In this document: piece after piece, positions 22,401-64,000 of the stretch
Layout of the letters: the number at the start of each line of letters is the position of its first letter
How positions within the stretch are numbered: the first letter of the stretch is position 1
Source: Hydrolagus colliei
Taxonomy: Eukaryota
Direction: 5' to 3'
NCBI GenBank assembly: GCA_035084275.1
Contig: CM068757.1
Location: forward strand, 9,796,001 to 9,860,000
Length of the DNA: 64,000 nucleotides
Translations under genes and position numbers: made by a program
Notes under the pieces: generated by a model
What the model was told of the DNA's origin: nothing
The model's input: the letters and a program-made list of their open reading frames with translations, nothing else
The model's database searches: none

Positions 22401-22464
22401 ATGGGAGTCAACCTGTGTGTCCTGGTGTGGGCTCTGATGTCCAGCGGTCCCTTCTGCTCGGCAG
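22401..22464 (+). CDS. Gene 2 exon 1, signal peptide
   Basis: MGVNLCVLVWALMSSGPFCSA, followed by g|gtagtg. Confidence 0.8.
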
Positions 22465-25400
22465 GTAGTGAAGTAACTCGCTTTATAGCAACCTGTCTGG
22501 TTGCCTTGTTTGGTTGCTGTGGGGTGTGTGTGTGTGGGGGGGGGGGGGGGGAGGGGGTAATAGAGGAGTGAAATCAACATGTTCTTGTTATCACATTATA
22601 ATTCTTTCCATTTCAAAAAAAACCTGTAGGTTTCTAATGGCAACGAAAAATCCAGATGCTTTAAGAGCTGCCTTTTATGCTTGTGTGAATTTGTCGGCTA
22701 CAGTCCTGTTAATACCGAGGCGCGACCCAACCCTTGCTCTGAGCAAATGCTGTTTTCACTAGTAGATCACACTGGGCCTGGATAAAGACCCTTTAGATCT
22801 ATCCCCCCCCCCCCCCATCGGGAAAGGCACCCTATAAATGCAATTTTGTTGTTACTGTTGTTGTACCCTCTGGGTGAAGAAATACTCTTGAGGTGTCTGC
22901 TCTTTCCAATCATTAAATGTGTGCTTCTGTCCCTGAGAGGATCGACTTCAAGATCTTCACTCTTGTTTTCAAGTCCCTCCACTCCTCTGAACCCCCCCTA
23001 CATCTCTGATCTCCTCTCTCCCCAAACCAGCACCCGCTGCCTTCGCTCCACCGGGTCTGGCCTCCTCCATGTCCCTCAAATCCTCCGCTCCACCCTCGGC
23101 GGCCGTGCCTTCAGCCACTCTGCCCCGATGCTCTGGAACTCCCTTCCTCACTCCCTTCACCTCGCACCCCCCCCCGCTCTTCCCAGTTTCAGATCACAGC
23201 TAAAGACCTTTCTCTTCAACTATGCCTTTGGTCACCTGTTTACCCCTGCCCCTGGCTCTGTCCCGGGATCCGTTACTGTGAAGCGCTTTGTGACACCTTT
23301 CGGTGTGGAGGGTGCTATATAAATCAAAGTTGTTGTTGTTGTTGTCCCCTTGTTCTGCTGTCTCTGTACATCTGAAAAAAATTGTTCTGGCCTTACTTTC
23401 TCAATTCAATTTTAAAACAATCATAACTTGCTGTTATATAATTGTCTTCGCGTGGGCTAGTGCTCCGGAGATCTTAACAATGGTACAGTTTGATGCAGAT
23501 CTGGGGAGAGGTGACAGTAGACTCGGTCAAAGGAAAAGGTCTTTGGGTGAGATTTGAATTTGAACATGGGCCAAACAAGTTGGAGGGATTGAAGCAAAGG
23601 AGTTCCAGGTTTTCAGGAAGTATGGACAGAAAGCATGGCCACAGAAGGTGGAGGAGAGGGGATGAGGGATATGCAGAAGGTCAGAGTGGTAGGCGGGTGC
23701 TGGGTATGAAGAGATTTAGAGGTAAGAGCAGAGATCTTGAAATCGATCCATTCTGTAACAGGACATGAGTGGAGTCTGGCCAGTGCTGGGGTCATGGGAG
23801 TGCGGAGCCAGGTAAAGGGGAGAATGTGGCTGCGGAGTTTTGAATCAGTTGGATTTTGTGAATGGCGGAGCTGGGGAGACCGGCATTGTAGCAAGTAGGA
23901 GAAATCTTGTAGCAAAGTCTGTTTGAATTTAGCTCAGCAATAGTCTGTGCTTTTAAAATCCACCATTAGGTTACACATTGTTTACAATCTACAGTAGTTG
24001 TATTTGATGGCACATTTGTTAAGAATAACACTATCCCTTGTCAAGTAATGTGATTTCCTCTTGATGTAAGAAAGTGTGTTTTTAAATAATAAACCACTCA
24101 GAACAACTTTGGTTGACCAACATAAAGTGATGGATGTTTCAATGTAACACTAAGAATTCCGAAACAAACACCCTTCATAAGTGCCTTGATATTGTTTGTG
24201 GTAAGAGTTACAAGCTTGAAGGGCTTAGATGTTATTCTTAGTGAAGGGCACTGTATAAAGTGTATAATTTTGTTTTCTGTCATCTGCAGGTACCTTAGAC
24301 GTAACCATGTTTAAAGGTGCAAAGGAAGTGCTATTAGACGCAACAGTTAACCTCGAGTGCAAACTAGCTAAACATGTACCAGGTACACTTAACCTTGAAC
24401 AGGTGGGCGTACAGTGGATGTTCACCCGAAAGGATGGAACGCCGGAAGAAATCTATGTGTACAATGGACAAAAACATCTTCCAAAGAGAGCAGGAACAAT
24501 GATGTCAGACAAACTCTTAAAACTAGGAGATGCAACCCTTGAACTTTCTAAAGTACAATTTGAACACGAGGGACTATACACATGTATTATATTTGTTACT
24601 CCAGATAAAGGAGAAATGTCTGGATCAATTTTGGTGTCAGGTAAAAGAGATTCAACAAGCTGTACATTGGGATATGTGTTGAGATGTAAAGAGCATTTGA
24701 AGATAGGAACAGGAGTAAATTGTTCAGCCTGACCAGACAACTTCACCATTTATTAGACCATGGCTGATCTGCAAATTTTATTTCCCTACCATTTTATCAG
24801 ATCCCTTGAAGCCAGTCAGGAATCTGGGTGTCTAGTTTTGACCCTGAACTGTCCATCTTACCCCACAAATGAGCCATGACCAGAACTGCCTTCCACCATC
24901 CCCATAACATTGCCAGACTCTGCCACTGCCTCACCCCTCAGGCTGCTGAAACCCTCGTCCATGTATGCATCACATCAAGGCTCGACTAAGGAAATGCCCT
25001 CCTCGTTGGCCTTCCTGGCTCTTTCCTTCACAAGCTGCGGATCATGCAGATGTCTGCAGCTCATGTCCTCTCCCGCACCAAGCTCTGTGACTACATCACT
25101 CCCAGCGTCACCTGGCTTCATCCCCCAGAGGATTGAATTCAAGATCCGTTTTCAAGGCCATTCACGGCCTTGACCCCTTCGACTCCCTAAGATCCTGCCT
25201 GCCCCCTCCATTCACCAGGCTCCGGTCTGATCCATGTCCCCCGCACAACTTGCCCTACCATTGGTGGACGGGCTTTCAGCCCCTCTGCCCCCACACTCTG
25301 GAACTCCACCCCACAGTCCCTTCGCCTGGTTCCTCACTTGCCTCCTTCAAGGCCAGTCTCAAGATCCTCCTCCCAACTCTCTCCCTCCCCTCCAAAATCT

Positions 25401-28400
25401 CTCCCTCCCCTGTGTCTCCCCCTTGCTCAGGTCCTGAACTGACTGTTCGGTGCCTTGGCACGTCCTCCCAACGTGAAAGGCACTCTATAAATGTAATTTT
25501 GCTTGTTGTTACTTAATGTCCTTCTCTCCTCTCCACCCTGGTTTTGCAACTAATGTTCTTTTTTTACAGTTAAACCAACAGTCAGCTTGTCTACAAAACA
25601 CTTTACTGTGGTGAGCAATTCAGAGGGCTCTGTGAGGTGCGACATTGCCAGATTTTATCCTCAGGAATACAGTCTCAAGTGGCTCAAGGTGTCATCAGGA
25701 AAGACAGAGACAGTTGTGAATGATATCTGCACAGGTGCTCCAGTGCCTAACAAAGATGGAACGTTCAATGTGTCCAGCCAGATACAGATTGAACCAACAA
25801 TGGATGCCGATGGGACCATCTACCAGTGTGAGGTTAAGCACAGAACGCTTAGTAGGCCCTTGATAACAGAGGCCAAACTCACCGTGAAAGGTAAATAGAT
25901 ATCAGATAGCTACAAGAAGAGTGAAAGGAGAGCTTCTAAGAATTATTTTCACACACTCTGAGCTGTTTGGCCATGGAATGGTTCTATCAGAGGCAGAGTT
26001 AATTGTGTTTTTCCAGAAGAAAGTAGACGGGTACTGTATGTGAAAGAAAAATGTCTTGAAAGGGTGTGGAGAAACAATGGGGCAGTGGGATCAAACAAAT
26101 GATTTGCTCTGAGAGCTGGTCAGACTCAAAAGTTTAATGTGTAAATTTGTAAACTGATGTGTAAATGTTTATGATTCTATTTCATAAGTAGAGAAACAAA
26201 ATTAGAGTTTTTTGTGACTCGTAGAGGAAGATTTCAAGATCAGTTTGCACTTTTATATGCAAGGTCTCAGAGGCAAAGTCAAATATTAATTTCAGCTTTT
26301 GGACTGTGATTCTCAATTTGAGTTTCAAAGAAAACAATTTTGGCTCTCGAATCCTGAAAGTTGTGCTTGGTTTTCCGGCACATTTGTTGGAACTGTAGAG
26401 CCATACCTGCGGTGAAATTCCACATGCATCAGACACCATGTTGCTTGTGATGTTGCCTTTTGCCTCGAAGACTGTACCCTGTTATTTATCATGTTTCAGA
26501 ACCAGAGAGAACATCAGGAGGAGCGATTGCCGGGGCTATAATTGGAACATTGATCTTCAGCGTGTTGGCATTTGCTGGACTATTTTTCGTTTATACAATG
26601 CATTTTCAAAAAGGTAAAGTGTTGCTTGGTTATAGGCTTTCAGTTTACATTGTGTTAGGGATCTGTTAAATGTGATCTTTTATCTAATCTGCTATTTTTA
26701 CCTCCCTTTTTTTCTCATGTATGCATCGAGTTTCCTCTTAAGTGCATTTTGAAATGAATAAGTACAAGAATATCATTTACATTTAATATGTCAAATTTCA
26801 CATTGGGTTGCTGTCTGAAATTGGTTTAACATGTTGAGGTGCATGAACGTAAGAGGAAGCTGGATTCTCATTTGGGGGAAAAGTGAATAGAAGTTTGTGG
26901 GAAAGAGTACAGAGTGCATGGAGACTCGTGCAGAGTAAACACCAGCATGGACTAGTTCGGCCAGAGATCCTTCGTAAATCTATGTAAAAGCACAGTTGAG
27001 AAGACAGGTAGGGAGTGAAGAATGTGAGACAGTGTCCCAGAGCATGGGGGCAGAGGGGCTAAAAGCTGTTCTTATGTGCATGTATGATACTGTATCTCCT
27101 ATTCTATGTTCTTACTGGAATCAGTGCTTGGGTGGCAGTACACACAGAGCAAACACAGGCAAACATTAGAATACCCGGTTTTAACTCGTGTTTTCTTTCC
27201 TCAGCTTCTCCAAAAATCACCGAAATCAGCACACCTGTCACTATTAGACACCAAGAAGAAGCCTTAATAAGTTGCCAAGTTACTAGTTTTAGACCAGTTA
27301 AAATTTCCATCTCTTTATATGTCAAAAGAAGCAAACAGGATAAGAAGATAATTTATCAATGGAACAACACTATGCCTCAAAATTCTGATGAGGAAGCGAA
27401 TCTTCTCTCAAATGGAAAGGACTGTTGTGATAAATCCTTCATTCCTAATTTCTCGCTTATTAGTTTGAAAGACGGGAATTCGAGTGTGAATTGTTGCGTT
27501 AAAATGTTTCCCGACATGTATAGTGATAACGAGGTGGAATTAACCTTTCAAGTGGAGCATCAATGTTTTTGGACTCCAGTGGAGAAGAAGATAATTCTGG
27601 AGGTCGTTGGAGGTAACTGAATGAATTAACACTTTTTATGCAATTCCGCATGATAACATAATAATTTTTACATTTGTCGTTGAAATGTTTGAAATCCTTC
27701 ACAAGATTTTACTTTTTAACATGGACATGCCTTGCTGATAATCTGGAAAAGTTACCATAATCATGAGTTGAATTCCTATCTCCATTGGTGGCACGCTCAT
27801 CGGTCATGGGTTCAAGCCCCGTGCCAAGACTTGGAACTCATATAATCTAAGATGACTTTGCAATAAAAGTACTTGGGTGTGCTGAATTGCTCAAGGTGCT
27901 CATCTTTGTGTGAGACATTAAAATCCAAGGCTGTGTCTGCCTGTTCGGGTAGATATCAAAGAGTGCACAGCATTATTTGCAAAGAGAAAAGAGTTTCTCC
28001 CAATGTCCTGACCAACAATCCCCCCACCCCACCAAACTTTGGTAATAGGCTGTTGCATTTGCCCATAGAATACACTTTGGGATGTCCTACTAACATGTAA
28101 ACTGCTATATCAAATGTAAGGATTATTATTGTTATTATTTCACTGCTGGCTGAGTGAAAATTTTGCCCACCAATTATAGTTAATCCACTTTACAGCATAC
28201 TCTGTGAATCGCTCTGAGAGGTGATGTAGTTCTATATAAAACTAAGTATTATTAATATTATACACATAGTGCTTTGTCTGCATAAAAGTAAGACATCTCA
28301 AAAGGATTTGCATTTATTTAGGAAGGGCATTGCTACCTTTTAATTTTGGCTTATTCAGAGAAAATTCCCATCAGCAACCAGGATCTTGTCCTTTTTCTGA

Positions 28401-31400
28401 TGCTATTTTTCTATGTTCTGCTATTTTTCTTTCTCAAAGTTCCACCAAAGATTTCGGACATTGTACTGCCACCTCGTATCATTCACAATGAGCTGGTGGC
28501 CTTGGTCTGTCCCATCAATGGATTTAAGCCAAGACCATTGAGCATCACTTGGTACCAACATGAGAGTAATGGCAACAAGAAAGAAATTGCTTACCTCAAC
28601 AAAGACACAAGTAGATGCCTCGGAGTTGCCTGCAGGAAGATGAATAAGTTCAACCACTACATCAGTGAAATGCAATATGAGGATAAGACGTATACCATCA
28701 TCAGTGTATTGAATGTTATACCAGATATTCAAGACGATGCGGGAATGAATTATATCTGTGAGGTGCATCATGAACCCACTGGCAAAGTTGAAGAGAAAAC
28801 AGCTAGGCTGTTTATTAAAGGTAGGTTTATTTAAAAAATACATGACCGTTAAAAATTACTGAAGCAGCTCTGTACTGCAATAGTGAAATACTTTATTATT
28901 GCACTAGTCAAGAGGTTCTGGAGGCAGTGATTCTGTTAACCTTGCAAGCCAAAGGCCAAATGTGCAGGCTGATCTGAGCTGCACAAGCAAGGAAGCTTGT
29001 CATTGTTCCCAATGTCATGCTCAGAGATTTAACTTGCTCGAGTAATCTGGTGTACCCCAAGCCATGATTCTTGCAAACCTGCACTTGCTTTAGTTATACT
29101 GGAGGGTGCTGTGGACATGTGTGGATGGGTGGGAGTGAGGTGGGAGTGGGGTGGTAATTGGGATATTACCGAAAATATCAAAGAAGACAATGACTTGCCT
29201 TAAAATAAACAAGCGAAAAAAAAGTATCCTGTTTGTTTTAGTTTCAAAATGTCAATGATATCCTTCTGTTTTAATGCTGCATTCATATTATTCTACTTTC
29301 AGGCACACCCAAACTGCAGGAGATTCAGATAGACCCCAAAACACCTGTGGCAGAAAAGCCTTTGAAATTAAGCTGCCAGGTCAATTCATTTTACCCTCAA
29401 ACAATCAAAGCTGAGTGGTTTAAGAACAATGAGGAGATACCATTAGAATCACAAGATAGTGAGCCTACGATAGGAAAGGATAAGTTGTTCCATTTTGTAA
29501 CTAGCATGACGACTGTAGTCACAAAAAAGGATGTTGACAGCAAGTACATATGTAAGGTGCACCACGAAAGCCTAATAGAGCCAGTGGAGACACTTTGGGT
29601 CCTCAGCCGTTTGGGTGAGTATTAATTTTGTACATTGAGGGTTGATGTTGATCATCATTTTGTGTCTTCTATGAAATGGCAGAGTGAGGTATTCAAATAT
29701 TTTAATATTTGCTATAAAATGTTATTTTTTGCATTGTGAATTTATCATATGCACAAAAAATCACAAATATACGAATCAATCTGGTATAAAATGAAAAAGA
29801 AAGTGTTTTGCTACATACATACATATATAATTATAAACAAAACAAAATACTGCAGATGCTGGAAATCTGAAACTAAAACAGAGAGCTGGGAAAACTCAGC
29901 AGGACAGGCAGCATCTATGGAGAAAGGAAAATAATGCCTTCAGAAAACCCCCCTGTAATAAATTGGTCATTTCAATCCATAACTGTTTGTGGGACACTGC
30001 TGTGCGTAATTGGCTGTCGCGTTTTGCCCACTTGTATATAGTCAATTCACTTTGCAGTATATTCTGCAAAGCACTTTGAGACGACTAGAAAATGTGATAA
30101 GCATTTTATCAAATGCAAGGATTATTATTATTATAAAGAGGGAAAAGCACCAAGCCTACTTGTAATATATCTGTCATTCAACTTTTTATACAATTATGAA
30201 TCGGTCGAACTTCACAAAGGGAGGAATGTTTGTTTTGGTATGAATTCAGCAGATACTAATTCTTGCATCTGCTATAGAGCCTTATCACATTATCAGGATA
30301 CCTCAAGGAGCTTCATGTGATTTACTGTGAGGTTTAGCGACTGTATTTGTAGGCAAAAGAAGGCAGCCAATTTGTGCACAGGAATGCCCTATAAAAACCT
30401 AAAAGTGAATGACCAACTTAAGCTCGTTAGTCAGGAAAATGGGAAAAACTCAATTCTCTTGACGAATAGTGCCATGGGATCTTTAATATCCACCTGAATA
30501 GACAGTCTGTTTAACAGTCCATCTGTGTCTCACCCAAAGTACAACACCTCTGGCAGTTGCTACCTATATCAGTAAATCCTTTGAAGGTTTTGAGGCATCC
30601 TCCCAATGTGAAAGGCAAAGTATCCAATCCAAGGATTTATTATTATTAGTTGGCACTAAAGTTTGGATTTCAAAAACTGGATTGGAGAAGATAGGGATGA
30701 GTAATATTTAGATGACAGAAGAAAAAGAAAGAGTAAGGAAGGTAAGGAATTATACCTGGGAATTAATGAGTTAGTGTGGGAGATGAGATGGTGTCAAGAG
30801 TCTTGATTTCAATATCATGAGGATCCAAAATTGCATATTTAGCAGTAAGCATCACCAAGAAGGATAAGTTAAGAAAAACAAATTATTTTAATGATATTGA
30901 TAAAATAGAAGCCGAGGGAGAAAGATTGGAGACTTGGAAGGGAAACAGGCAATGTGGGAAAGTTACTGGAAAAAAAACTATACAGTATTTGTTACTGGTC
31001 TTCAGAGCAGTCAAGACTAATCTTAAACCTTAAGAGACACTGTAGCATAAATTGTGAAGCGATTTGAGACATCTCAATGATGTGATAAGGCACTAGGATT
31101 ATTATTTATTATTAATTTGTAACTTTTAAACTATTGAAGATTTGTGTGTTATTTACTGCCCGGTAAAGTGATCCAGTTGTTATTTTGTTCATCAATGTGC
31201 AATTGATTAATTTTCTCTTGTTCCAAATAAAGTATCTTTTCCCAAACTGACGGAGATTGAAATTGATCCACCGTTCCCGGAGATAGGGAAATCCGTTACT
31301 CTGTCCTGCAAGGCATATGACTTCTATCCCAAGGGAAATGAAATTTCCTGGATTCGGGCTTTTCAGAAAATGGAAACAAAATTCGAAAGTGAAGATACTA

Positions 31401-49344: not shown

Positions 49345-50485
49345 TTTTCATTACAGCATCAGACTGTTTCAAACCCCCGCACAGTTTCCCACGGCGTCCC
49401 TCAGGGCTCTGTCCTCGGTCCCCTTCTTTTCACCCTTTACACGCTCCCTCTGGGCGACGTCATCCGCAGACATGGGGTAAATTTCCACATGTATGCGGGT
49501 GACACCCAGTTGTACCTTTCTGCCTCATCCCTCAACCCCCAGACGATCGATGTTCTGATGTTCTGACGATTCGATGTCTGTCCGACATCGAATCGTGGAC
49601 GAGGGACAACTTTTTGCAATTGAACGTGAATAAGACCGAGGCCCTCCTGATTGGCTCAAGCCAGCGCCTCCGCACATCGGGCGCTGCCAGCCTCAACATC
49701 CAAGGCTGCACTCTCCACCTCACAAAGCCAATCAGGAACCTCGGCATCATGTTCGATCAAAAACTTTCCGTCCTCCCCCACATCCGCGCCTTGACCGGCA
49801 CCGCCTATTTCCATCTGCGCAACATTGCCAGGCTCCGCAACTATCTTACCCCCCGCGCTGCCGAAACACTTGTGCATGCTTACATCACCTCACGGCTGGA
49901 CTATGGAAATTCTCTCCTAGTCGGCCTCCCCAGTTCCTCCATTCATAGGCTGCAGGCCATCCAAAACTCTGCAGCCCGTGTACTATCCCGCACCCACCTC
50001 CGCGACCACATAACCCCCACCCTCGCCCGTCTCCAGTGGCTCCCCATCCTCCAGAGGATCGAGTTTAAGATCCTCGTCCTCACCTACAAGGCCTTACACG
50101 GCCTTGCCCCATCCTACCTAACTGATCTACTCTCCCCCTACATGCCCACCCGGACCCTCCGTTCAACAGGACTTGGCCTGCTCCAAGCCCCCCGCCCGAA
50201 CTGCATCGGAGGCCGGGCCTTCAGTTTCTCCGCTCCCACCTTATGGAATGCCATCCCTCAATCCCTCCGTTTCGCCTCTTCCCTTTCCTCTTTCAAGGCC
50301 GGTTTGAAGACTTTCCTCTTCGATCGTGCCTTTTGTTCCACCCCGAACTCTTTTACCTCCCCTTCGTGTTTCACCCCTTCCCAAACACTCCCCTCCCAGC
50401 TCGGGTCACATGCCTCTTGTTCAGCGCCTTGGGAAGTCCTCCCGACGTGAAAGGCGCTCTATAAATGTAAATTGTTGTTGTTGTT
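49345..50485 (+). mobile_element. Best-preserved L2-type LINE 3' part (RT C-terminus)
   Basis: [16 protein letters not shown]...[10 protein letters not shown], one stop, then a 278-aa ORF (LNVNKTE, AYITSRLDYGNSLL, QWLPILQRIEFKIL) and tail aaaggcgctctataaatgtaaattgttgttgttg. Confidence 0.9.
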
Positions 50486-52769: not shown

Positions 52770-53655
52770 CTGTCACTCCACTCCCTCTTCAGTGAAAAAA
52801 GTGCCTGTATTCCCCCTCCCACTCCATACCTCCTTTACCAATTTCTCCCGCCTCCAGTGCCTCCCTCTCCCCCTTGCTCCTCTTTCCCTTCTTTCCCAAT
52901 CTCTCCCCGCTGTGCCCCTTTTCCCCATGCCCTCTCTGCCCCCCTCCCCCCCTGTGCCTCTCCCCCACTATCCCTTTCTCCCCCCTTTGCCAAGTTCTCC
53001 TGCCTCCTGTGCTCCCCTCTCCCTTCCTTTGCCCCTCTCTCCCCCAGGACTCATTGGTTACCGCTCGATAGTTCGAAGGTTCGTTAGTCCGAAGCTTTCC
53101 CTAACCCTAACCTTTGGACTAATAAACCTTCGGAGTTCTCCCCCCACCCTTTGCCAATCTCTCCAGCCTTCTGTGTCCCTCCCTCCCTTTGCCTATCTCC
53201 CCCTGTGCCCCCCTCTCCCCCACTATGCCCCCCATCTCCCCGAGCCCCCCTCTCCCCCACTATGCCCCCCATCTCCCTCCTTGTGACCCCCTCTCCCCCC
53301 CACTATGCCCCCCATCTCCCTCCTTGTGACCCCCTCTCCCCCCCACTATGCCCCCCATCTCCCCTTGTGCCCCCCTCTCCCCCCCACTATGCCCCCCATC
53401 TCCCTCCTTGTGACCCCCTCTCCCCCCCACTATGCCCCCCATCTCCCCCTGTGCCCCCCTCTCCCCCACTATGCCCCCCCCTCTCCCCCCCACTATGCCC
53501 CCCATCTCCCTCCTTGTGACCCCCTCTCCCCCCCACTATGCCCCCCGTCTCCCCTTGTGACCCCCTCTCCCCCTACTATGCCCCCATCTCCCCCTGTGCC
53601 CACCCCTCCCCCCCACTATGCCCCCCCCCCTCTCCCCACCCCTCCTCCTCTGTCC
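52770..53655. repeat. C-rich low-complexity region and ~45-bp minisatellite upstream of gene 4
   Basis: Recurrent ccccactatgccccccatctccc..ttgtg.ccccctctc units from ~53200. Confidence 0.9.
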
Positions 53656-53666
53656 CCGTTGATAAT

Positions 53667-53680
53667 GAAAGTGAAACTGA
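53667..53680 (+). promoter_or_regulatory. ISRE/IRF-E, gene 4 promoter
   Basis: GAAAGTGAAACTGA, starting 124 bp upstream of ATG 53791. Confidence 0.75.
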
Positions 53681-53790
53681 GCTCAGGGCGCGGTTGCAGC
53701 TCAGGCTGAGGCCGCGGAGACAGAGGGAGAGAGAGCGAGAGGCCTCGCCACCCACACCCAGCTCAGACCCTCACCCCAACCTGGAGGATC

Positions 53791-53848
53791 ATGTCGGTGC
53801 AGCCCCTGGTCTGGACTGTGCTGCTGCTGCTGCCGCCCCCGCTACTCG
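53791..53848 (+). CDS. Gene 4 exon 1, signal peptide
   Basis: MSVQPLVWTVLLLLPPPLL, followed by g|gtacag. Confidence 0.78.
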
Positions 53849-56800
53849 GTACAGTCCCGGGGCCTGGGGAGCGGGGGGGGGGGGGGAGAGCGTGGGGGGG
53901 ATGCCGCGGCTCCTCAGAGTGATCAGGCCCGTCAGCCGGGGCCTCACCAGAGCAGAGGGTGGGGGGGGGGGTGAGGGGTAGTGCGGTGGGGGGGGGGTTT
54001 GGGGGAGGGTAGGAAGGGAGGGGGTAGTGCTGGGGGGAGAGGGTGTGAGAGGGGGAAGGCGGGCAGGTGGTAGGGGTCGTGTTTGAACCAAAGTATTCAG
54101 TAGATGTTGATCCATCACTTACTGTGGTTGTCGTCCCTCCCACCCCCCAGGTTACAGTCTATCATCCCCCCCCCCCCCCCCCCCAGGCTACTGGGTGTCT
54201 ATCACCCCCCTCCCCACCCAGGGTATATGGTGCCTACCTCCCCCTGCACCACCATGTCTGCCTCCCACACCAGGACTACATTGTCAGTTTGAACTGGGGT
54301 CCGTTTGATATGGAAATTTTCCGATATCGATGTATCGGTGGGCTCATATCGCTATATACCGATATATCGATATCTCCGGGTTTTTTTTATCCTGTGTATG
54401 CGCGCGCATTCGGAGGTGCGTGCTCTAGGCCCAGGAGGTTTGCAATGCCGGCGACAAGGCAAGTTGTAAAAGTTTTATATTATACCGATATATCGATATA
54501 TCACCGGACACGATTTATCGATATTTTGCGATACACCAATTTTTTTAATATCCTGAATTTTTCGATATACCAATATATTCGAGTTTCCAATATCGGCATA
54601 TCGATATGAAAAATTATACCGATATAACCGATATATCGCCGGACACTAGTTTGAACAAACTCAGATTCCTGTTGTTGGCTCAGAAGCCACTATCTCTGGA
54701 GCAGAGGAGAGAGTGCGACCAACTGAACCCGGGTTGACACCTATTTTAACAACAATAATAATCTTGCATTTGAAATGGTGCCTGACCACGTCTTCGAGAC
54801 ATCGCAAAGCTCTTCACAGAATATCCAGTAGAGTGAATTGACTGTATTTTTTTGTGTGGCCAAAATTTGGAAAATCTTCGATTTGCTTCCAATTGTACTC
54901 GTCTTCAAGTGACTGAGTAGATCACACTGTGACTCGCATTGTTGTTTTGGTCAGTGATTCCAAGAGGGGAATGGAGGAATTATTCACTTGTTTACAGCTT
55001 AGGATGGGGGGGTCAGATATAGTTAGAGTGTTTTCCTGAATAATATTGGTTTGTCTTTATTCAAATCTACAGCCAAGATGACATTGAGAACGAGTCCTGC
55101 TGAATCATTGGTAAATGAAGATGTACTCCTACAGTTTGAAATTGCTGACCTGACAGGCATTTCGTTGGATAGAAAAAACCTTGGAGTTCTGTGGGCCTTC
55201 AATGGTGAAACTGTTGTTCAATACAATAACGGAGTCTTGAACATTGCCTCGTCAGGCATTGAGCTGCTGGAAACTTCCATCCTAAAAGGAAACATGTCAC
55301 TGTTATTGAAAAAGGTGACGGTGAAAGAAATGGGAGAATATCAGTGCACAGTATTTGTGGCTCCAAATGAGCAAGCTATTGGCAATATAACTCTTGAAGT
55401 TTTAGGTAAGCTACTGGTGATTGTTGCAAACATTATTTAAGAATCCTACAATCATGTTTGGTTTTGATATATCACATCAGGAGGATTTCTCAAAGCCCTT
55501 GTTAAAAGCTTGTTAAAAGAAATAGTACATGTTTGTTTTGTACATAATAATAGTTATCCTTGATATAGTGCCTTGTCACTTTGATTCACAATTATAACTG
55601 TAAGGTACTAGTATATTTGTAGGTATTTACATTACAGTACTCATATTTGTTCTGGCAGCACGGCCCTCAGTGATTGTGGTTTCGGAAGAAAAGGTGGAAA
55701 TCGGCCATGGAGGAGAGATGACCTTGGATTGTCAGCTAAATGGATTTTATCCTTGCAAAGCCAGTGCTGAGTGGTTTCAGAAGACGTCACAAGACGAAAT
55801 GAAGCAGTTAACAGATATATGCATTAGCCAAGTATTCACCAACACCGATGGGCTGTGCAATATATCCATTGAGGTTCGACTGTTACCTGTCATGGAGGAT
55901 ATTGGTAGCACTTTCTACTGTGTTGCAAAACACAAGACTTTTCAAGAACCATACTTTGCGGAAGCTCGGGTTACATTGAAAGGTTAGTTGCAGTGGTCTT
56001 TGTCCTTTATTAAAATGGTAAACATCAATTCTGATTCAAGGCGTAGGGGGGAAAAATGTATAGGTGCAAGTTAGATTTTTTTTAGGAGAGTTTTGAAAAC
56101 AGGGCTAAGAGGTGAACTTTTAGATCAAATTCGAAGATTGAGATGAGGAGGGATTTGGGGAGGGAGTTTAAGAGAATGGAAGTATAGATTTCTCAAGCTT
56201 GGCCATTGATGGTGGGGAAACCAGACACGGGCCCCAGTTTGTGGAATGGGCAGGAGAGAGGCTGGCTGGAGGAAATTGGAGAAGTTTGGGTATGACACAG
56301 GTGTGGAGGGATTTACCAATGACAGGATCGTGAAGTTGATCTGATGACAGGACAGGGAATAATGGAGTTAGGCAAGGATGAGTGAGTTTGTCAGCACACA
56401 GATCCTTGTGGACAGGATGTGGGAAAGTTGGGCTACTTTCTGTTCAGCAGAAACAGGTACATTAAGCTGCAAGGTGATAGACCTGTGAGGCGCTTGTTTT
56501 AACACCAGTATAAGATAAAGATGTAGTATTGAGAAAGTATGGTTGAAATATCCTTACTGGGTAATGACACAGCCCATTTTCTCCAGAAAATTCCATGTTA
56601 TTCTGCACAATGTTGAACACTGATAGTTATGATCTTTGTTTGTCTCTCTGATTAAGCAGTTGGCACTTGTTATTCTCTGCTGTAGCATTCTGAGCTATTG
56701 AAAAATGAAGTCAATTTGAAAAGTATTGTAACTAAATCTTAATGTTTTTTGTTTATAGAGGTAGAAATTCGTATTTCCCATGGATCGGTCGTTGCAAGTA

Positions 56801-59800
56801 TTATCTTGAGCATTATATTCACTGTTGCAGCAATAATACTGGGGATCTTTGTCTATATGAAGTACTTTCATAAAGGTAATCATCTGGAAATTTTGTGTGC
56901 TACTTTCTAGGAATATATCCCTGTGCGAACTAAGAGCTTAAGGGGATGAAAGCTTCACTGTCCAGTAGTTATGTAGATTCTCTTATGTGTCTTGTATGGA
57001 ACAGATCATGCAAAACTGTTGTCTCTTTTCCCCTTCATTCTAACATTCATAGACACATTTGTTGGGCCAGCTAAATGTTGTGACACCCCTTGCCATCCCA
57101 TCATGTCTGTCCTGTCTGTATTAAAGAGCAATCCTATCAGTCCCATTTAACTGCCCTTTCTCCATACCTTTACTTTTTAGGTATCTATCTAGTTTCCTTT
57201 TTGAAGCTAATATTAAGAGTGTATCAGATGTGACTGGAGCTGGTCATCAAAATATGTTGGACAAATGCAATTTGAAATATTCTTGCTTTGACTTATGTTG
57301 TTTTATTTTCAGTTCCACCCAAAATTTCAGATATCAAAAAACCTGCTCGTATTGTACATCAAGAATCTGTTGAATTAATGTGCCATGTGTCTGGATACCA
57401 ACCCGAAGACATTTCTATTTGCTGGTACCTGAAGAGTTTGAAGGAAAAGCAAAAAAAATTGATTGGGGAATATCATAAAAGTCAAATGCAAAGTTTACCT
57501 TTTATTGGTAAAAAGAGCAAAATCCCAGGCCCTGACCCCGAGTTTGCAATATATGAGAACCCTGATCAGTGGGAAGTCAAAACAGTCAATGTTAAAAAAA
57601 ATAAGGATGGAACATTCAGTCTCTCCAGCATTCTTTGTATCTTTCCTGATATAACTGAACACAACAAAGCTGAAATCATGTGTGACGTGAACCATCCATC
57701 TGGCAAAAGAGTCGTCAAAACCCTCTCTTTAGAGGTTACTGGAAGTAAGTGAACAAATGTCAATTGGAAAGTGACTTCTATAATGCGTAGCTGCTGTGAA
57801 ATGTTTTGCTATGGGGCACACGTGTCTCCCTATTTGTGCTCATTGTAATTAGAGTCGCAAGGTTCTACAGCCAATGCTTTCTCAAGCCTCACCATTTATG
57901 GCCAATCTAAATTCAATACCGAAGATCCATGATTTGGAGTTTTCAGGTTAATGTCTTGTTGAGTTCTCTTCACCATCTTTTCCCTAATTGCTTTCTGGAG
58001 CCCGTGTCATTCTCTTTGTAGGTCATGGTTTTGTACTGTATATTCCATCTTCATTGGAACAACAACAACAAAATTACATTTGTATAACGTCTTTCACGTC
58101 GGGAGGTCATCCAAGGTGCTAGACACTCAATGTTTCAGACCTGAGTTGAGGTCGGGATTGGGGAGGGTGAAGCGAAAGGATGGGATTTGGGGTGATTGAT
58201 AGGATTGTCGAAGAGGAGGGTCTTGAGGCAGTACTGGAAGGAAGCTAGGGAGGGGGCGAGGCGGAGGGTTTGCGGGATGGATCAGAGTGACTGAAGGCTC
58301 GCAGGCCAATGGTGGGGTGGGTGAGTTGGTGGACGGGGAGCAGGCCGGAGCTCGCTGAGCGCGGGAGTGGGCAGGGGTCAGGAGGTCAATAGGGTGGGGC
58401 AAGGCCATAGAAGGCTTTAAAGATGAGGAACAGGATCTTGAATCCTCTGGGTGATGAGGAGCCAATGGATTCAGGTGAGAATGGGAAAGATGGGGTCACG
58501 GAGCTTGCAGCAGTAAAAGACACGGGCCTCAGAGTTCTGGATGATCTGCAGGCTATGGAGGTAGGAGTTTGGAAGACTGAGTTGGAAGCAACGAGTTGGC
58601 ATAGTCCAGTCAGGATGTGATGAAGGCATGAATGAGAGTTTCAGCGGCCTGAGGGGCGAGGTAGTGGCACAGTCGGGCAATGTTGGGTAAGTGAGGGAAG
58701 ACAGTGTGGGTCATGGTTTGGATGTGTGGGAGACAGTTGAAGATCGAACAAGACACCTTGGTTCCTGATTGGCTTGGTGAGGTGAGTACTAGACAAGGGG
58801 CCAACACCATGCAGGAGATGACCCTGGTTAAAAAGAATAAGGCAAATATTTGGTTGATGTTTGGGTTGTTGATTAGATCCCATAGGAGGAACGAACACTG
58901 AGGGAAGTGGTGAATTCTATGGAACCCACATAGGCACAGTTCACTCAAATACTGCACTCCAGTGTCTGAATACACTGGTTTCTGGATCCAATCCGTTGGT
59001 CAAATGCCAAATCTGTATCCTTAAATCGAGGTGTGAAACATGCCCGAAAATCACTGTGGCAAATCTTTAACTTTGGTCTTAATTAGGAAACTGCAGTTCT
59101 TCTATGTACTGTATATTGTATATATATACTTGAAAACTTGCAAAGTAAAAGTAAATTTTCTACAGTTCTGTATAGCCTTAAATTTAAGACCAAATTCATC
59201 CTGTATGAACAGTAACACCCGCTATCTCTGGTTCCTTGGTTTGATAGTTTTACCGAATCCCGAGTTAGTAATTCATGATACTGTACATTGTAGAAAAATA
59301 ATGTGCTCGCCTTCAACAGATGATATTACTATCAAATGACTATTTACCTTCAAAGCCAATGTGGGATTCTAACCAAATTAATATCTTTTTTTCTTTCCCT
59401 TTAGTTCCTCCGCAATTGGATGAAATAATTCAACCTCCTATTGTGCTTCATAACAATTCAATCATGCTGACGTGTCCCATTAATTTTTTCAAACCAAGCT
59501 CCTTAGTTATCAAGTGGTACAAAATAAAGGATATAGGGGAGAAACTTCTCATAGTACACTATGTTAATGGCATGGATAAAAACAGCTGTCAGCCACAGTT
59601 TTCCCATAGTGTGAGTAAATTCAGTTATCCTAACCACACTGAGAGTATTCACAGCAAGCTGCTATTCAATGCAACAATTGAAGAAGATGAAAAGAGTCAG
59701 TACTTTTGTGAAGTTCAGCATCTTGCTTTGCAGAACCCAGTTGAGCAAGTTGTCGAACTACAAGTCAAAGGTAATTCTTTTAAGTTCACTTACACATAAG

Positions 59801-62620
59801 TAGTTACTACACTTTACAGTAAAGCACTTTGATATATTTCAATGGCTGATAAGGTGCTATATCCAATGCAAGGATTACTATATGAAATATGTTGGAAGCA
59901 GTTTAAACTGTTCCTTTTCTTTTCCAGCTTTTCCAATCCTGAATACCATTGTGAGTGACCCACCAAACGCTGTAGTTGGAGAGAGACTGTCTCTGTCCTG
60001 CAAAGTGCATTCCTTTTATCCAAAATATATAATGGTTCGTTGGTTTAAAAACAAGGAGCTTCTTGAAACCGATGACATGATGAACGCAACTCAAGGCTCT
60101 CCTGAGAAAGAGTTGTTTGAACTGACCAGTCAATATACATTTACTGTGTCGCTCTCAGACCTGAGCTCGGTATACAAATGTGAGGTTGATCATGAGAGTC
60201 TCATGTATCCAAGAGTCGAATATTATATTCCTGAAAACCTGGGTATGTTTGAAGTTATTTTCTGCCAAGTCATTTTGTGAAGCACATTTTGTAGAAGAAT
60301 ACATTTTGTTTCATGTATTGACATTTTAAAATTAATTTGGATGAACATATATATGTTGGGCTTAAGAGTTTTTATCTATTTTGTGCTTTTCAGTTGAATT
60401 GAAATTGTAATTGTACCTTATTTTTTTTCTTCCGTTTTCTCTGGATTTCAGTGTCTTTCCCAAAGGTATCAGAAGTGTTGAGTGACCCACCCATCCCTGA
60501 AATTGGAAAGAAGTTGACCTTAACCTGCACCATAAATGAGTTTTATCCAAAAGACATTCAGGTTGAGTGGTTCAGAGACAATGTGGAAATGGAAATGAAT
60601 GGGGAATATGGAACAATTACAAAAGAATCATCCAGTAAAGATGGTCTAAACTGTATAGTTACCACAGTCACCCTTACTCCAACCACTGATGACCATCAAG
60701 CCTTATACACAGTAGAAATTTGCCATTCAAAATCGTCAACCAAACCTTACAAGCAAACTTATCAGCTGTTGATTAAAGGTAACTTGAAGAATAGTTTATT
60801 GCAGGAGACTACAAATGTCCATCAAGATGTAAGGAGATCAGGTGGGAAATATTTGAGCAAATGTAGGGGATGAGTGTAACCCTAAAATTATACTAGAGGT
60901 ATAGGTATGCTGTTACTATCCAATGTTGCTTTTGAAATGGTAACTTTAATAAACCATTTGAAGTAAAACTGGACAATCCAGGACAGATGATAGTGATGCA
61001 GTATATATTTATTAGTCTGAGCTCAGGGAAAATAAAGTCTCAATTGTTCCCAGAAAATGTAACTTCTACCATTTTCTGTTGGTGCTTAAAGGTAGTAAAA
61101 GAAACACACAACTCTACTGGCACATTTCTTTCTTCCTCGCCCTCACCAACTCCAAATTATATCCTAAGCAAGTGTTCTATGTAAGAGAATGCTCTTGAAA
61201 ACCATGCTGAATTCTATATGTTCCCAGCTCTATTTGCTGTGATGTACTGGTTTAGCACTCGTGATACAAGGAGAGCTTTATTCAAATAGAAATTGTGTCT
61301 CTTGCACTAATTTGTGCTTGTTCACGTTATCAGAAACTATGGAGAGTTAATGATTTGCGTAGACAAAACATATCTAGACAGGTTAATAAAATAGATTCAT
61401 CAGGACTTATTCATATTTGTTACCTATTCAGTGTTTTTATGATCTTGTTACAGGTTCCCCCAGATTTTCAGAATTCGTACTGGAACCAAAGACACTTAAG
61501 TTTGGTAAACACGTATCTGTGTCCCAAACAATGACTGGCCTTTGCACTAAAGATTTTAGTATTGAGTGGTACAAAGGGGATAATCATGTTATTGAAGGAG
61601 TTGTGAATTCCAGCCTAACTCGGGAAACTCAAAACACTTACAGCATGAATAGTTGTTTGAAATTCCTCCTGACTGCAGAGGACTTTGAAAAAGATATAAG
61701 TTTTCATTACAAAGAGAATACCAAAACAGATGTGTTCAAACGACATTGTCATTTGCCTCTGAAACGTGAGTATATTCTGAGTATTTAATATATTTCTAAA
61801 ATCTTGCAATAATTTTCACATTACTGTTTATTGGATTTAATAGTCTTCTTTGCAAGGATAGAAGCTCTTATTTAACATGCGACTGATGCACTTCTGTATT
61901 TATCTTGTTACACATTAGTCTTTTCTATTGAACCATATTTTTATGATTAATAATTCATTAATAGTATGCTTCAATAGAAAAGACTAACGTGGAATAAAAT
62001 AAATAAATAAGTGCTTCAGTAATAATTATTAATAATAATAATCCTTGCATTTGATGCAACCTTTGCTTAATTTCTTATTGAAGCACATTACCTGCATTTT
62101 TGTAGTGCTTTCTCCAGCTCTGTTATGGGATGTCAACCTGGACTGTGGCTTGAACCAACTATCATCCTTTCTTGGAGGACTAAGCCAGGCTGACACATAA
62201 CATCTTGTTAAAGCTCAGAACAGTTTTATTCCTTCTCATTAATTGTGTCATCATGCAGTTGCTGTCAGCGAAACTTACATTGAGCATTGCTTCTGTTTCC
62301 TCGCAGATGTATCTCCTATAGTGTCAGAAATCATATGCAAACCTGAACGACCCAAAATTGGTGAAATGTTAACGTTGACTTGCACGATTGATGACTTCTG
62401 CCCGGGGGATATTACCATTCTTTGGAGTAGGGGATGGATGGATTTCCACAATGAACAATTTTTACAGGAACCCCGCATTGGTGCAAATGGACTTTACTCT
62501 ACGTTTTCGGAGCTGAAAATTAAGATGGAGCCAGATGATGAACCAGAGGAATTTAGTTGTGAAATTCGACATGCAAAAACAAATGATGTTGTGGAGAAGT
62601 TTACCAGTCTGTTGGCTTAG
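53791..62620 (+). CDS. NCR3LG1-like: Gene 4: NCR3LG1-like SP-IgV-IgC1-TM followed by 6 post-TM C1 domains (965 aa)
   Basis: Exons 53791-53848, 55073-55405, 55659-55982, 56759-56875 (TM), 57313-57744, 59405-59770, 59928-60242, 60452-60778, 61454-61765 and 62307-62620 total 2898 nt, open, all phase 1. Confidence 0.85.
54295..54648. mobile_element. Non-autonomous hAT-like MITE (354 bp)
   Basis: Exact 8-bp direct repeat GTTTGAAC at 54287-54294 and 54649-54656. Imperfect TIR (tggggtccg / cggacacta) and many internal gatatatcg subterminal motifs. Confidence 0.75.
55073..55405 (+). CDS. Gene 4 exon 2, IgV (B-strand Cys absent)
   Basis: DVLLQFEI, VLW, GNMSLLL and GEYQCTVFVAP. Confidence 0.9.
55659..55982 (+). 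CDS. Gene 4 exon 3, IgC1
   Basis: LDCQLNGFYP, AEW, NTDG and FYCVAKH. Confidence 0.92.
56759..56875 (+). CDS. Gene 4 exon 4, transmembrane (absent from the ORF track)
   Basis: tatag|ag acceptor and g|gtaat donor. EVEIRISHGSVVASIILSIIFTVAAIILGIFVYMKYFHK. Confidence 0.88.
57313..57744 (+). CDS. Gene 4 post-TM C1 domain 1
   Basis: 144 codons. LMCHVSGYQP, ICW, NKDGTFSLSS and IMCDVNH. Confidence 0.9.
58058..58800 (-). mobile_element. Degenerate L2 3' fragment
   Basis: Minus-strand NIARLCHYLAPQAAETLIHAFITS motif and (aac)n tail. Confidence 0.75.
59405..59770 (+). CDS. Gene 4 post-TM C1 domain 2
   Basis: 122 codons. LTCPINFFKP, IKW and YFCEVQH. Confidence 0.9.
59928..60242 (+). CDS. Gene 4 post-TM C1 domain 3
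   Basis: 105 codons. LSCKVHSFYP, VRW and YKCEVDH. Confidence 0.9.
60452..60778 (+). CDS. Gene 4 post-TM C1 domain 4
   Basis: 109 codons. LTCTINEFYP, VEW and YTVEICH. Confidence 0.9.
61454..61765 (+). CDS. Gene 4 post-TM C1 domain 5
   Basis: 104 codons. VSQTM, IEW and ISFHYK, with a c|gtgagt donor. Confidence 0.85.
62307..62620 (+). CDS. Gene 4 post-TM C1 domain 6, last coding exon
   Basis: LTCTIDDFCP, ILW, NGLY and FSCEIRH, then TAG at 62618-62620. Confidence 0.88.
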
Positions 62621-63943: not shown

Positions 63944-64000
63944 TACTTTGTGAAACAGTATTGCTTATATTATTTGAAATGTTTGGGTCATTTATCACAA

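Follow-up and report, generated by a model that had tools for sequence, protein, structure and literature searches.

Tandem genes of a B7-H6-like family in the chimaera Hydrolagus colliei encode arrays of C1-set-type immunoglobulin domains after the transmembrane segment

The window analysed here, 64,000 nucleotides of the Hydrolagus colliei genome, contains three tandem forward-strand genes (gene 2, 22401-35715; gene 3, 40112-48533; gene 4, 53791-62620) that raise the question of where a long array of immunoglobulin (Ig) domains, encoded downstream of a transmembrane (TM) exon, resides and acts. Exons for a leader, an IgV and an IgC1 domain come first in all three and are followed by a single TM exon of strong hydrophobicity and then by the post-TM Ig exons: six in genes 3 and 4, and in gene 2 seven together with an acidic mini-exon (Table 1). 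Every Ig exon is an open frame with AG/GT borders and phase 1-1, and the stop codon lies within the final Ig exon, leaving no tail beyond the last domain. Exon lengths in genes 2, 3 and 4, respectively, are 408, 414 and 432 nt for D1 (136, 138 and 144 codons), 381, 381 and 366 nt for D2 (127, 127 and 122 codons), 312, 312 and 315 nt for D3, 321, 324 and 327 nt for D4, and 315, 314 and 314 nt for D6, and D5 measures 312 nt in all three. The initial annotation had given these D1-D6 lengths exactly, and the order that it proposed, SP-IgV-IgC1-TM-(Ig)6-7, is borne out by the exon bounds and the Pfam matches, with all coordinates agreeing with the sequence; it had missed the 54-nt mini-exon of gene 2, and the TM exon of gene 4 is now placed to start at 56759. 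The spliced models are not chance constructions, for they can be aligned over their whole length with Callorhinchus LOC103174895 (71% identity) and LOC103174894 (83%). Upstream lies a fourth member of the same family, gene 1 (Pfam V-set 34.5 bits, C1-set 46.7 bits), in which a 606-aa Pro/Thr-rich region directly follows the V-C1-TM module.

Table 1. Exons of the four family members in the window (D1-D7, post-TM Ig domains)
Feature	Position	Strand	Basis
Gene 1, same family, upstream of genes 2-4	8380-16934	+	clean 874-aa ORF
Gene 1 leader	8380-8431	+	
Gene 1 V	9668-10018	+	
Gene 1 C1	11697-12023	+	
Gene 1 TM	13128-13202	+	
Gene 1 tail	15115-16934	+	
Gene 2 leader (MGVNLCVLVWALMSSGPFCSA), phase-1 donor	22401-22464	+	leader scan; spliced ORF aligns with LOC103174895 from residue 1
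Gene 2 IgV	24290-24640	+	AG/GT, phase 1-1; Pfam V-set 75.8 bits on protein
Gene 2 ectodomain IgC1	25570-25890	+	exon bounds; Pfam C1-set on protein
Gene 2 TM cassette exon, 114 nt, phase 1-1 (...GGAIAGAIIGTLIFSVLAFAGLFFVYTMHFQK)	26500-26613	+	splice sites; hydropathy 2.51
Gene 2 D1 (post-TM Ig)	27205-27612	+	exon bounds; Pfam
Gene 2 D2, contains CPINGFKPRPL	28440-28820	+	exon bounds; motif residues invariant in alignment A1
Gene 2 D3	29303-29614	+	exon bounds
Gene 2 D4	31233-31553	+	exon bounds
Gene 2 D5	32572-32883	+	exon bounds
Gene 2 D6	33252-33566	+	exon bounds
Gene 2 acidic mini-exon (GDDENDEPAPGGESGSD), 54 nt, phase 1-1	34545-34598	+	matches acidic linker of LOC103174895
Gene 2 D7 and stop codon; generic Ig, not C1-set by Pfam	35411-35715	+	exon bounds; per-domain Pfam
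Gene 3 leader, tentative	40112-40175	+	leader scan; clean ORF; resembles Callorhinchus leader
Gene 3 IgV	41480-41839	+	acceptor picked by comparison with P0001
Gene 3 ectodomain IgC1	42605-42922	+	exon bounds; C1-set 55.6 bits
Gene 3 TM cassette exon, 117 nt, phase 1-1	43566-43682	+	splice sites; D1 273 nt downstream
Gene 3 D1	43956-44369	+	exon bounds; C1-set 21.7 bits
Gene 3 D2	44812-45192	+	C1-set 41.6 bits
Gene 3 D3	45684-45995	+	C1-set 29.8 bits
Gene 3 D4, without canonical cysteines	46314-46637	+	C1-set 17.4 bits (below cut-off); cysteine table
Gene 3 D5	47340-47651	+	C1-set 49.4 bits
Gene 3 D6 and stop codon	48220-48533	+	C1-set 45.4 bits; exon bounds
Gene 4 leader, tentative; inside GC-rich block	53791-53848	+	leader scan
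Gene 4 IgV, B-strand Cys to Phe	55073-55405	+	exon bounds; cysteine table
Gene 4 ectodomain IgC1	55659-55982	+	exon bounds; Pfam
Gene 4 TM cassette exon, 117 nt, phase 1-1	56759-56875	+	acceptor sequence; rebuilt CDS a clean ORF; hydropathy 2.84
Gene 4 D1	57313-57744	+	exon bounds
Gene 4 D2	59405-59770	+	exon bounds
Gene 4 D3	59928-60242	+	exon bounds
Gene 4 D4	60452-60778	+	exon bounds
Gene 4 D5	61454-61765	+	exon bounds
Gene 4 D6 and stop codon	62307-62620	+	exon bounds

The proteins of genes 2, 3 and 4 match the Pfam C1-set in 5-6 stretches each (E-value = 9e-55 to 3e-65). The earlier claim that the post-TM domains belong to the C1-set holds in gene 3 for D1, D2, D3, D5 and D6, all of which exceed the gathering cut-off of 21 bits (PF07654), but not for D4 of gene 3 (17.4 bits) or for D7 of gene 2, which has weak generic Ig matches and no C1-set match in Pfam and corresponds by homology to the domain that closes the caecilian, bichir and frog proteins. 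The C-strand Trp is kept in D2-D6, and that of D1 is replaced in gene 2, caecilian, bichir and frog. The post-TM domains are nearest to the constant domains of Ig heavy chain and SIRP, and are conserved to the same degree as the ectodomain; on alignment of the sequences, the D2 motif CPINGFKPRPL is the most conserved face of the array. Membership of the sarcomeric I-set group was rejected, since I-set matches reach 33-53 bits per protein against 183-217 bits for the C1-set. For the ectodomain, the best PDB sequence matches are CD276 (B7-H3; E-value = 5e-22) and NCR3LG1 (B7-H6; 9e-22), and its model superposes on B7-H6 in Foldseek with a TM-score of 0.87-0.89 and an rmsd of 2.3-2.5 Å. The description "B7-H6-like" is thus supported, with B7-H3 matching equally well, although "ligand" may suit these molecules better than the "receptor" of the initial annotation. 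The AlphaFold model (mean pLDDT 83.6) shows a beta-sandwich for each of the eight domains and a helix at 264-280; a fold search with the whole model returned only generic multi-Ig matches, and we leave the inter-domain geometry uninterpreted because the pTM is 0.41.

Gene models of more than 20 species show the same domain order, and the predicted proteins come from chimaera, sharks, rays, bichir, coelacanth, lungfish, caecilians, frogs and newts. Database models of such proteins, suspected from the outset, therefore exist, nearly all as "uncharacterized", with a few automatically named NCR3LG1 (B7-H6) and others "hemicentin-1-like". Among the mammal, bird and teleost matches obtained the family is apparently absent, a possible reason why it has so far escaped notice. 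Shark and salamander proteins of the gene-4 type group in a single clade with 100/100 support, in agreement with the old, selected architecture postulated earlier; judged from these comparisons, the order SP-IgV-IgC1-TM-Ig array has been conserved for more than 400 million years, since before the split of sharks and bony vertebrates. Related to it are the shark "NLRC3-like" proteins P0017-P0022, uncharacterised gene models encoded elsewhere than in the 64-kb window, which share a homologous V-C1-TM-D1 unit (D1 starting VAPKVT(D/N)IIKP) and differ in that D2-D6 are replaced by CARD, NACHT and LRR. In the P0019 gene model, V (28-116), C1 (145-227), TM (~252-270) and a D1-like Ig domain (278-424), which begins VAPKVTDIIKP and gives a full-length match to gene 3 D1 (E-value = 8e-10), precede CARD (444-517), NACHT (653-819) and LRR.

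Each TM exon contains a 19-residue window with a mean Kyte-Doolittle value of 2.5-2.8, followed by a basic flank (HFQK, RIFKK or KYFHK in genes 2, 3 and 4). Over the 15 residues on either side of the TM, the net charge is -0.26 N-terminally and +2.83 C-terminally (positive-inside bias), and the orthologues carry signal peptides. The single membrane segment of the initial annotation stands: the proteins of genes 2-4 contain no second hydrophobic segment, and there is no credible TM exon downstream, the only hydrophobic ORFs found there (37520 and 40365) being intergenic and either stop-flanked or upstream of the next gene. Among 66 proteins with the D2 hallmark, the TM precedes D2 in about 55 and follows it in none but one 2407-aa fused model. 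Given one TM and no other hydrophobic segment, the post-TM array of the TM-containing isoform is predicted to lie in the cytosol. The cysteines differ between the two sides of the membrane: in 20 sequences, the canonical B/F pair is present in every V and every ectodomain C1 (20/20 each, 40/40 together) versus 51 of 120 post-TM domains (D1 13/20, D2 19/20, D3 17/20, D4 0/20, D5 2/20 and D6 0/20). Conserved columns hold 90% of the ectodomain cysteines versus 38% of those after the TM, and sporadic cysteines number 0.24 versus 1.25 per 100 aa (about fivefold; Fisher p = 1e-11, with sequences treated as independent despite their kinship). N-glycosylation sequons after the TM (nine in gene 3) occur at the density expected by chance, and so are only weakly informative on topology; none is conserved beyond cartilaginous fish, and two in the ectodomain are conserved from chimaera to amphibians. 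In short, the signal peptide, the single TM with its charge bias, the cysteine pattern and the NLR-fused paralogues together favour a cytosolic array.

A cytosolic array presupposes that the TM and the Ig domains belong to one protein. The V-C1-TM unit and the array might be separate genes or alternative transcripts, produced by an internal promoter and leader before D1 or by polyadenylation after the TM exon, and merged by annotation pipelines: gene 2 has an in-frame ATG at 27084 with a leader-like sequence (MILYLLFYVLTGISAWV) upstream of the D1 acceptor, read-through of the TM donor meets a stop after 6-18 codons in each gene, and genes 3 and 4 have introns containing A[AT]TAAA motifs. However, genes 3 and 4 lack an equivalent of the leader-like ORF, a mere 273 nt separate the TM and D1 exons in gene 3 (273-591 nt in the three genes), and the join recurs in more than 20 species and three paralogue lineages. 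The TM-exon donors of genes 2, 3 and 4 are strong (AAG/GTAAA or AAG/GTAAT). Transcripts, which it was feared might never join the TM exon to the C1 exons, do so: the intron-free, RNA-like Logan contigs L001 (7529 nt; ORF 135-3044, 969 aa) and L002 (2754 nt; ORF 121-2475, 784 aa) carry C1-TM-D1 unbroken in one ORF, and the join is also contained in the Callorhinchus milii protein V9K7L7, which we take to derive from the C. milii transcripts deposited as JW861113-JW881738. When transcripts were searched with a short query spanning C1, TM and D1, the only matches were an Ensembl read-through chimera (P0024) and an unrelated Ig heavy chain. With the 27084 ORF confined to gene 2, short introns and transcripts that join the exons, separate genes or an internal leader were rejected, and an annotation artefact is largely refuted and highly improbable.

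A weightier alternative, which we nevertheless consider rather unlikely, is that the array acts outside the cell: the relevant long product would be a TM-skipped, secreted protein of eight to ten domains (V-C1-D1…Dn), and TM inclusion would be a switch to a tethered B7-like form, its cytosolic array being baggage or degraded. In five species, comprising two sharks, a ray, a caecilian and a frog (Carcharodon, Cetorhinus, Hemitrygon, Microcaecilia and Bombina), RefSeq lists isoforms from which precisely the TM exon is missing, and skipping is harmless to the frame because the exon is 114-117 nt long and in-frame. The skipped isoform would secrete the whole chain, with the array predicted to be luminal, so that the array may also, or mainly, act outside the cell. 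The true C1-set character of the domains, closest to Ig heavy-chain and SIRP constant domains, and the end of the protein at the last domain fit such a role, as do the disulfide cysteines of D2 and D3; this pair, kept in 17-19 of 20 sequences, would be surprising after more than 400 million years in a reducing compartment if it did not also serve a secreted isoform or core packing. On the other side, the TM is included in most gene models and in L001, L002 and V9K7L7, and its exon is 95% identical between the two chimaeras (gene 3 versus Callorhinchus). Three of the six array domains lack the disulfide in all lineages and each protein has 3-23 sporadic cysteines, which disfavours oxidative folding and secretion; moreover, some 700 aa are without a glycosylation site conserved beyond cartilaginous fish, and the D1-like domain is retained beside CARD-NACHT-LRR in the shark paralogues.

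We therefore prefer, as the probable though by no means certain explanation, that genes 2, 3 and 4 are ancient paralogues of a jawed-vertebrate B7-H6-like family with a membrane-borne V-C1 unit, a cytosolic Ig rod and a secreted second form. Going by the gene models and RNA contigs, the main mRNA would yield a single-pass type I membrane protein with a cleaved leader, an outward IgV-IgC1 ectodomain of B7-H6 fold and one stop-transfer TM helix, from whose basic flank to the C-terminus six to eight C1-set-derived Ig domains would extend in the cytosol. The ectodomain may be shown to an NKp30/CD28-type V-domain receptor on lymphocytes, and the rod may be a binding scaffold or sensor that couples the intracellular state to surface display, in parallel with the butyrophilin B30.2 domain and with the CARD-NACHT-LRR module that replaces D2-D6 in the shark paralogues. 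Skipping of the TM cassette, as in the predicted isoforms, would give a soluble, fully translocated V-C1-(Ig)n, probably a minor or regulated form.

Like B7-H6/NCR3LG1 and B7-H3/CD276, these proteins have a leader, an IgV, a C1-type IgC, a single TM and one phase-1 exon per domain; however, described B7 proteins have non-Ig cytoplasmic tails, whereas the TM is here followed by Ig domains totalling 680-830 residues. The butyrophilins (BTN3A1, BTN2A1), which combine a B7-like V-C ectodomain and one TM with a large folded domain in the cytosol for sensing an intracellular ligand and for inside-out signalling to lymphocytes, offer a working analogy, and the BTN2A1-BTN3A1 complex is among the structural matches (rank 50). 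Their cytosolic module is B30.2/PRY-SPRY rather than an Ig array, and membership of that family was rejected because B30.2 (PRY/SPRY) is absent from the Pfam matches. Cytosolic Ig-fold domains that work without need of disulfides occur in the muscle proteins titin, obscurin and APEG-1, but those are I-set and soluble in the sarcomere, whereas the present ones are C1-set and tethered to a membrane-spanning, immune-type ectodomain. To our knowledge, C1-set domains are otherwise confined to luminal or extracellular proteins, and the searchable literature offered no cytosolic precedent. UrIg2 and Ig heavy chains, with C1-set chains after a V domain, are among the best sequence and fold matches; all their Ig domains are extracellular and disulfide-bonded and their TM is C-terminal, whereas here the TM follows the second domain. 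UrIg2, a VJ domain plus nine C1 domains with the TM at the C-terminal end (PMC12227049), is therefore a different molecule. Searches for post-TM Ig domains, these LOC numbers and TM-anchored NLRs found none of them described in the searchable literature, an earlier mention being possible in the key B7H6 paper (Flajnik et al. 2012) or a review; the family has apparently never been studied.

Since cDNAs are defined in many species, these hypotheses are directly testable. C1-set domains are a hallmark of the extracellular machinery of adaptive immunity (Ig, TCR, MHC, tapasin and B7), and six to eight of them kept behind a TM would, if cytosolic, break that extracellular rule and provide a natural case of Ig constant-type domains folding without disulfides. 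In the conserved TM cassette exon there is a rare candidate for a splicing switch moving a 700-residue domain array between compartments, and the NLR-fused paralogues, taken with the Ig arrays, suggest that intracellular sensing and a lymphocyte-facing B7 ligand are directly and physically linked. Only tentatively, and at low probability, we suggest an unrecognised class of jawed-vertebrate immune molecules in which a B7-H6-like ectodomain is wired through one TM to an intracellular recognition module (Ig rod or D1-CARD-NACHT-LRR) for inside-out reporting of cytosolic events to NK/T cells, in which the cassette exon toggles the array between the cytosol and the outside, and which would contain the first C1-set domains selected for the cytosol. 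If this is true, the inside-out reporting logic of Ig-rod and NLR-fused B7-like molecules would predate the butyrophilins.

The three tandem B7-H6-like genes (genes 2, 3 and 4) lie on the + strand in the 22.4–62.6 kb interval of the window, and all of their exons have AG/GT borders and phase 1-1, one exon per domain being the classic layout of the immunoglobulin (Ig) superfamily. The spliced ORFs of genes 2, 3 and 4 encode 1085, 971 and 965 aa, respectively, and the stop coincides in each case with the end of the last Ig domain. The codon counts in the initial annotation agreed exactly with the exon lengths measured here, but the acidic mini-exon of gene 2 had been missed; it is kept as an acidic linker in LOC103174895, the Callorhinchus milii counterpart of gene 2. 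Each protein has one hydrophobic segment (Kyte-Doolittle 19-mer mean 2.5–2.8) followed by basic residues. As had been claimed, no second such segment was found by hydropathy in the three proteins, and a scan of the intergenic DNA of the window gave no credible candidate for an extra transmembrane (TM) exon.

Exons of genes 1–4 (D1–D7, Ig domains after the TM segment, numbered from it)
Feature	Position	Strand	Remark
Gene 1	8380-16934	+	upstream of gene 2
Gene 1 leader	8380-8431	+	
Gene 1 IgV	9668-10018	+	
Gene 1 IgC1	11697-12023	+	
Gene 1 TM	13128-13202	+	
Gene 1 tail	15115-16934	+	single 1.8-kb exon, ends with stop
Gene 2 leader	22401-22464	+	
Gene 2 IgV	24290-24640	+	
Gene 2 ectodomain IgC1	25570-25890	+	
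Gene 2 TM	26500-26613	+	
Gene 2 D1	27205-27612	+	
Gene 2 D2	28440-28820	+	
Gene 2 D3	29303-29614	+	
Gene 2 D4	31233-31553	+	
Gene 2 D5	32572-32883	+	
Gene 2 D6	33252-33566	+	
Gene 2 acidic mini-exon	34545-34598	+	18 codons, DGDDENDEPAPGGESGSD, between D6 and D7
Gene 2 D7 (last Ig)	35411-35715	+	includes stop
Gene 3 leader	40112-40175	+	tentative
Gene 3 IgV	41480-41839	+	
Gene 3 ectodomain IgC1	42605-42922	+	
Gene 3 TM	43566-43682	+	
Gene 3 D1	43956-44369	+	
Gene 3 D2	44812-45192	+	
Gene 3 D3	45684-45995	+	
Gene 3 D4	46314-46637	+	
Gene 3 D5	47340-47651	+	
Gene 3 D6	48220-48533	+	includes stop
Gene 4 leader	53791-53848	+	tentative, least certain exon
Gene 4 IgV	55073-55405	+	
Gene 4 ectodomain IgC1	55659-55982	+	
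Gene 4 TM	56759-56875	+	
Gene 4 D1	57313-57744	+	
Gene 4 D2	59405-59770	+	
Gene 4 D3	59928-60242	+	
Gene 4 D4	60452-60778	+	
Gene 4 D5	61454-61765	+	
Gene 4 D6	62307-62620	+	includes stop

Two intron-free Logan contigs behave like spliced transcripts. In L001 (SRR22028074, 7529 nt), protein P0035 is encoded by a single ORF (135–3044), downstream of which lie 4.5 kb of non-coding sequence, and L002 (SRR26159664, 2754 nt) has an ORF (121–2475) encoding P0038; both ORFs run unbroken through leader, V, C1, TM and D1 onward, and in the tree L001 is placed with newts and L002 with bichir. The TM-D1 join is also included in the C. milii UniProt entry V9K7L7 (P0193), which has a few residue differences from the RefSeq model. 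The assembled transcripts of the elephant-shark project were deposited as JW861113-JW881738, and we take the V9K entries of UniProt to stem from them. In the window, the TM-to-D1 introns are short (273–591 nt). Based on the two contigs, V9K7L7 and the short introns, the reading that the TM exon and the downstream C1 exons belong to separate genes was rejected, and their joining, as initially proposed, was borne out.

In the Pfam comparison, genes 2–4 showed one V-set match per protein and C1-set matches in 5–6 separate stretches (whole-protein E = 9e-55 to 3e-65). When gene 3 was scored one domain at a time against the Pfam C1-set (cut-off 21 bits), the ectodomain C1 reached 55.6 bits and D1 to D6 reached 21.7, 41.6, 29.8, 17.4, 49.4 and 45.4 bits, respectively; the extra last domain of gene 2 matched generic Ig only. 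The best solved relatives of the V-C1 ectodomain are CD276/B7-H3 (5e-22) and NCR3LG1/B7-H6 (9e-22), and the post-TM part matches Ig heavy-chain constant regions and SIRP-alpha. The AlphaFold model of the Callorhinchus orthologue, built with a 20-sequence alignment (mean pLDDT 83.6), has eight confident beta-sandwiches and a helix at 264–280, with disordered loops in D1 and D2, and its ectodomain resembles human B7-H6 (TM-score 0.87–0.89, rmsd 2.3–2.5 Å).

For the TM-containing product, several sequence features point to the cytosol as the predicted location of the array (D1 onward). Topology rules favour this side: the proteins have a signal peptide at the N terminus and one TM segment, and the 15 residues on either side of the TM bear a net charge of -0.26 (N side) and +2.83 (C side) over 23 proteins. 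The canonical cysteine pair is present in 20 of 20 sequences for both ectodomain Ig domains, and after the TM in 13/20 for D1, 19/20 for D2, 17/20 for D3, 0/20 for D4, 2/20 for D5 and 0/20 for D6. Conserved columns hold 90% of the cysteines of the ectodomain and 38% of those of the post-TM part. Sporadic cysteines amount to 0.24 per 100 residues in the ectodomain (11/4600), whereas the post-TM part has 1.25 (179/14300; Fisher p = 1e-11, a statistic that ignores the shared ancestry of the sequences). A reducing compartment tolerates free, unconserved cysteines and dispensable disulfides. N-glycosylation sequons in the post-TM part are as frequent as shuffling predicts, and outside cartilaginous fish none of them is conserved. 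Two sequons of the ectodomain are common to chimaera through amphibians.

RefSeq isoforms without exactly the TM exon (114–117 nt, in frame) were found in two sharks (Carcharodon P0012 and Cetorhinus P0011), a stingray (Hemitrygon P0212), a caecilian (Microcaecilia P0206) and a frog (Bombina P0052). In these, …LTVK is fused directly to VPPKV…, and in three of the five species the TM-containing partner isoform differs by this exon alone, which suggests a conserved splicing switch between a membrane and a soluble form. Skipping would route the whole chain through the translocon, giving a soluble Ig protein of 8–10 domains. The main rival reading, that the real work of the array is extracellular and performed by this soluble isoform, draws on such skipping being annotated in five species and on the cysteine pairs retained in D2 and D3, for which the isoform could account. 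However, we weighed it lower because both RNA-like contigs and most models show the TM-containing form, D4–D6 are unable to form the disulfide in any lineage, and as many as 23 stray cysteines would make a secreted protein a poor folding substrate. The basking shark (Cetorhinus) models P0011 (gene-3-type) and P0031 (gene-4-type) share an identical leader peptide, MGWAENSLPFLVPVLVALVTLAPLSE, either a first exon common to neighbouring paralogues or a modelling artefact.

Gene 3 shows 83% identity to C. milii XP_007885687.1 (LOC103174894), and gene 2 shows 71% identity, end to end, to the adjoining LOC103174895; the window thus probably belongs to another holocephalan. The order leader-V-C1-TM-(Ig)6-8 is also recognized in sharks, rays, bichir, coelacanth, lungfish, caecilians, frogs and newts, in records nearly all titled "uncharacterized protein"; the automatic name "natural cytotoxicity triggering receptor 3 ligand 1" occurs in Bombina, Rhinophrynus and Polypterus (as "NR3L1"), and one record is named "hemicentin-1-like". 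At E<=1e-30, an exhaustive profile search yielded 618 cluster representatives, of which some two dozen match near full length, and no mammal, bird or teleost was present among the 20 representatives identified by name. In the maximum-likelihood tree, gene 4 forms a clade with shark, ray and salamander proteins (support 100/100), and thus its lineage predates the divergence of cartilaginous and bony vertebrates; gene 2 clusters with a sawshark protein, and gene 3 with ten chondrichthyan sequences. The post-TM domains match the ectodomain in degree of conservation, the TM exon shows 95% identity between the two chimaeras (window and Callorhinchus), and D2 has a near-invariant motif, LTCPINGFKPRPL-I-W. 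The architecture is conserved and, judging from these comparisons, old.

Other post-TM parts are found in paralogues. Shark "NLRC3-like" proteins (gene models P0017–P0022, not in the window) have a B7-like V (28–116), a C1 (145–227) and a TM (about 252–270), then a domain (278–424) that can be aligned from end to end with gene 3 D1 (E = 8e-10) and likewise opens with VAPKVT-IIKP, and finally a CARD (444–517), a NACHT (653–819), NLRC4_HD2 and LRR. Because NLR modules work in the cytosol, the D1-type domain of these proteins would be on the cytosolic side, which also speaks indirectly for a cytosolic array in genes 2–4; the predicted proteins are in effect NLRs anchored in the membrane and bearing an extracellular Ig part. 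Gene 1, the fourth family member, joins its V-C1-TM module to a Pro/Thr/Lys/Asp-rich tail of 606 aa with PKPPPTD-like repeats, in a clean spliced ORF of 874 aa. To judge from these predicted proteins, the V-C1-TM module evidently serves as a platform to which different post-TM parts are joined.

Between genes 1 and 2, an open frame at 21257–21466 (+) resembles the middle of the gene 1 V exon (…VYTFNGGNRTFTRLGVKIFVHELLERNAFLYQPN…); Pfam gave no match for it, and it is probably the decayed remnant of a V exon. Two low-complexity blocks, both GC-rich and Pro/Ser-rich, carry long ORFs on either strand; they lie at 52000–54200, directly upstream of gene 4, and at 63126–63953, which includes an N run (63342–63508); the former may be the gene 4 promoter or a CpG-rich region. 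Intergenic retrotransposon remnants lie on the + strand at 49297–50450 (RVT_1, 31.4 bits at 49297–49563) and 17518–17892 (weak RVT_1 match), with related C-terminal ORFs on both strands, e.g. 19171–19605 (-) and 22846–23322 (+).

The family of genes 2–4 agrees with the B7 family in ectodomain, TM and exon phase, but not in the non-Ig cytoplasmic tail of the latter. Because the B30.2 domain of butyrophilins is absent, identity with these was rejected; UrIg2 and Ig heavy chains differ in their C-terminal TM (PMC12227049), and sarcomeric I-set proteins are also unlike this family. Gene models of the family are already in public databases, and we found no account of the Ig array after the TM, of the cassette exon for the TM or of TM-anchored NLR paralogues in the searchable literature, which did not include the 2012 B7H6 paper. 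On balance we favour, with moderate confidence and partly by analogy, a type I membrane protein with a cytosolic rod of C1-derived Ig domains, the soluble isoform from TM skipping being a second product. The partner to which such a protein would display its B7-H6-like ectodomain is presumably an NKp30/CD28-type receptor. The role proposed for the rod, modelled on the butyrophilin B30.2 domain and on the NLR-fused paralogues, is that of a scaffold or sensor.
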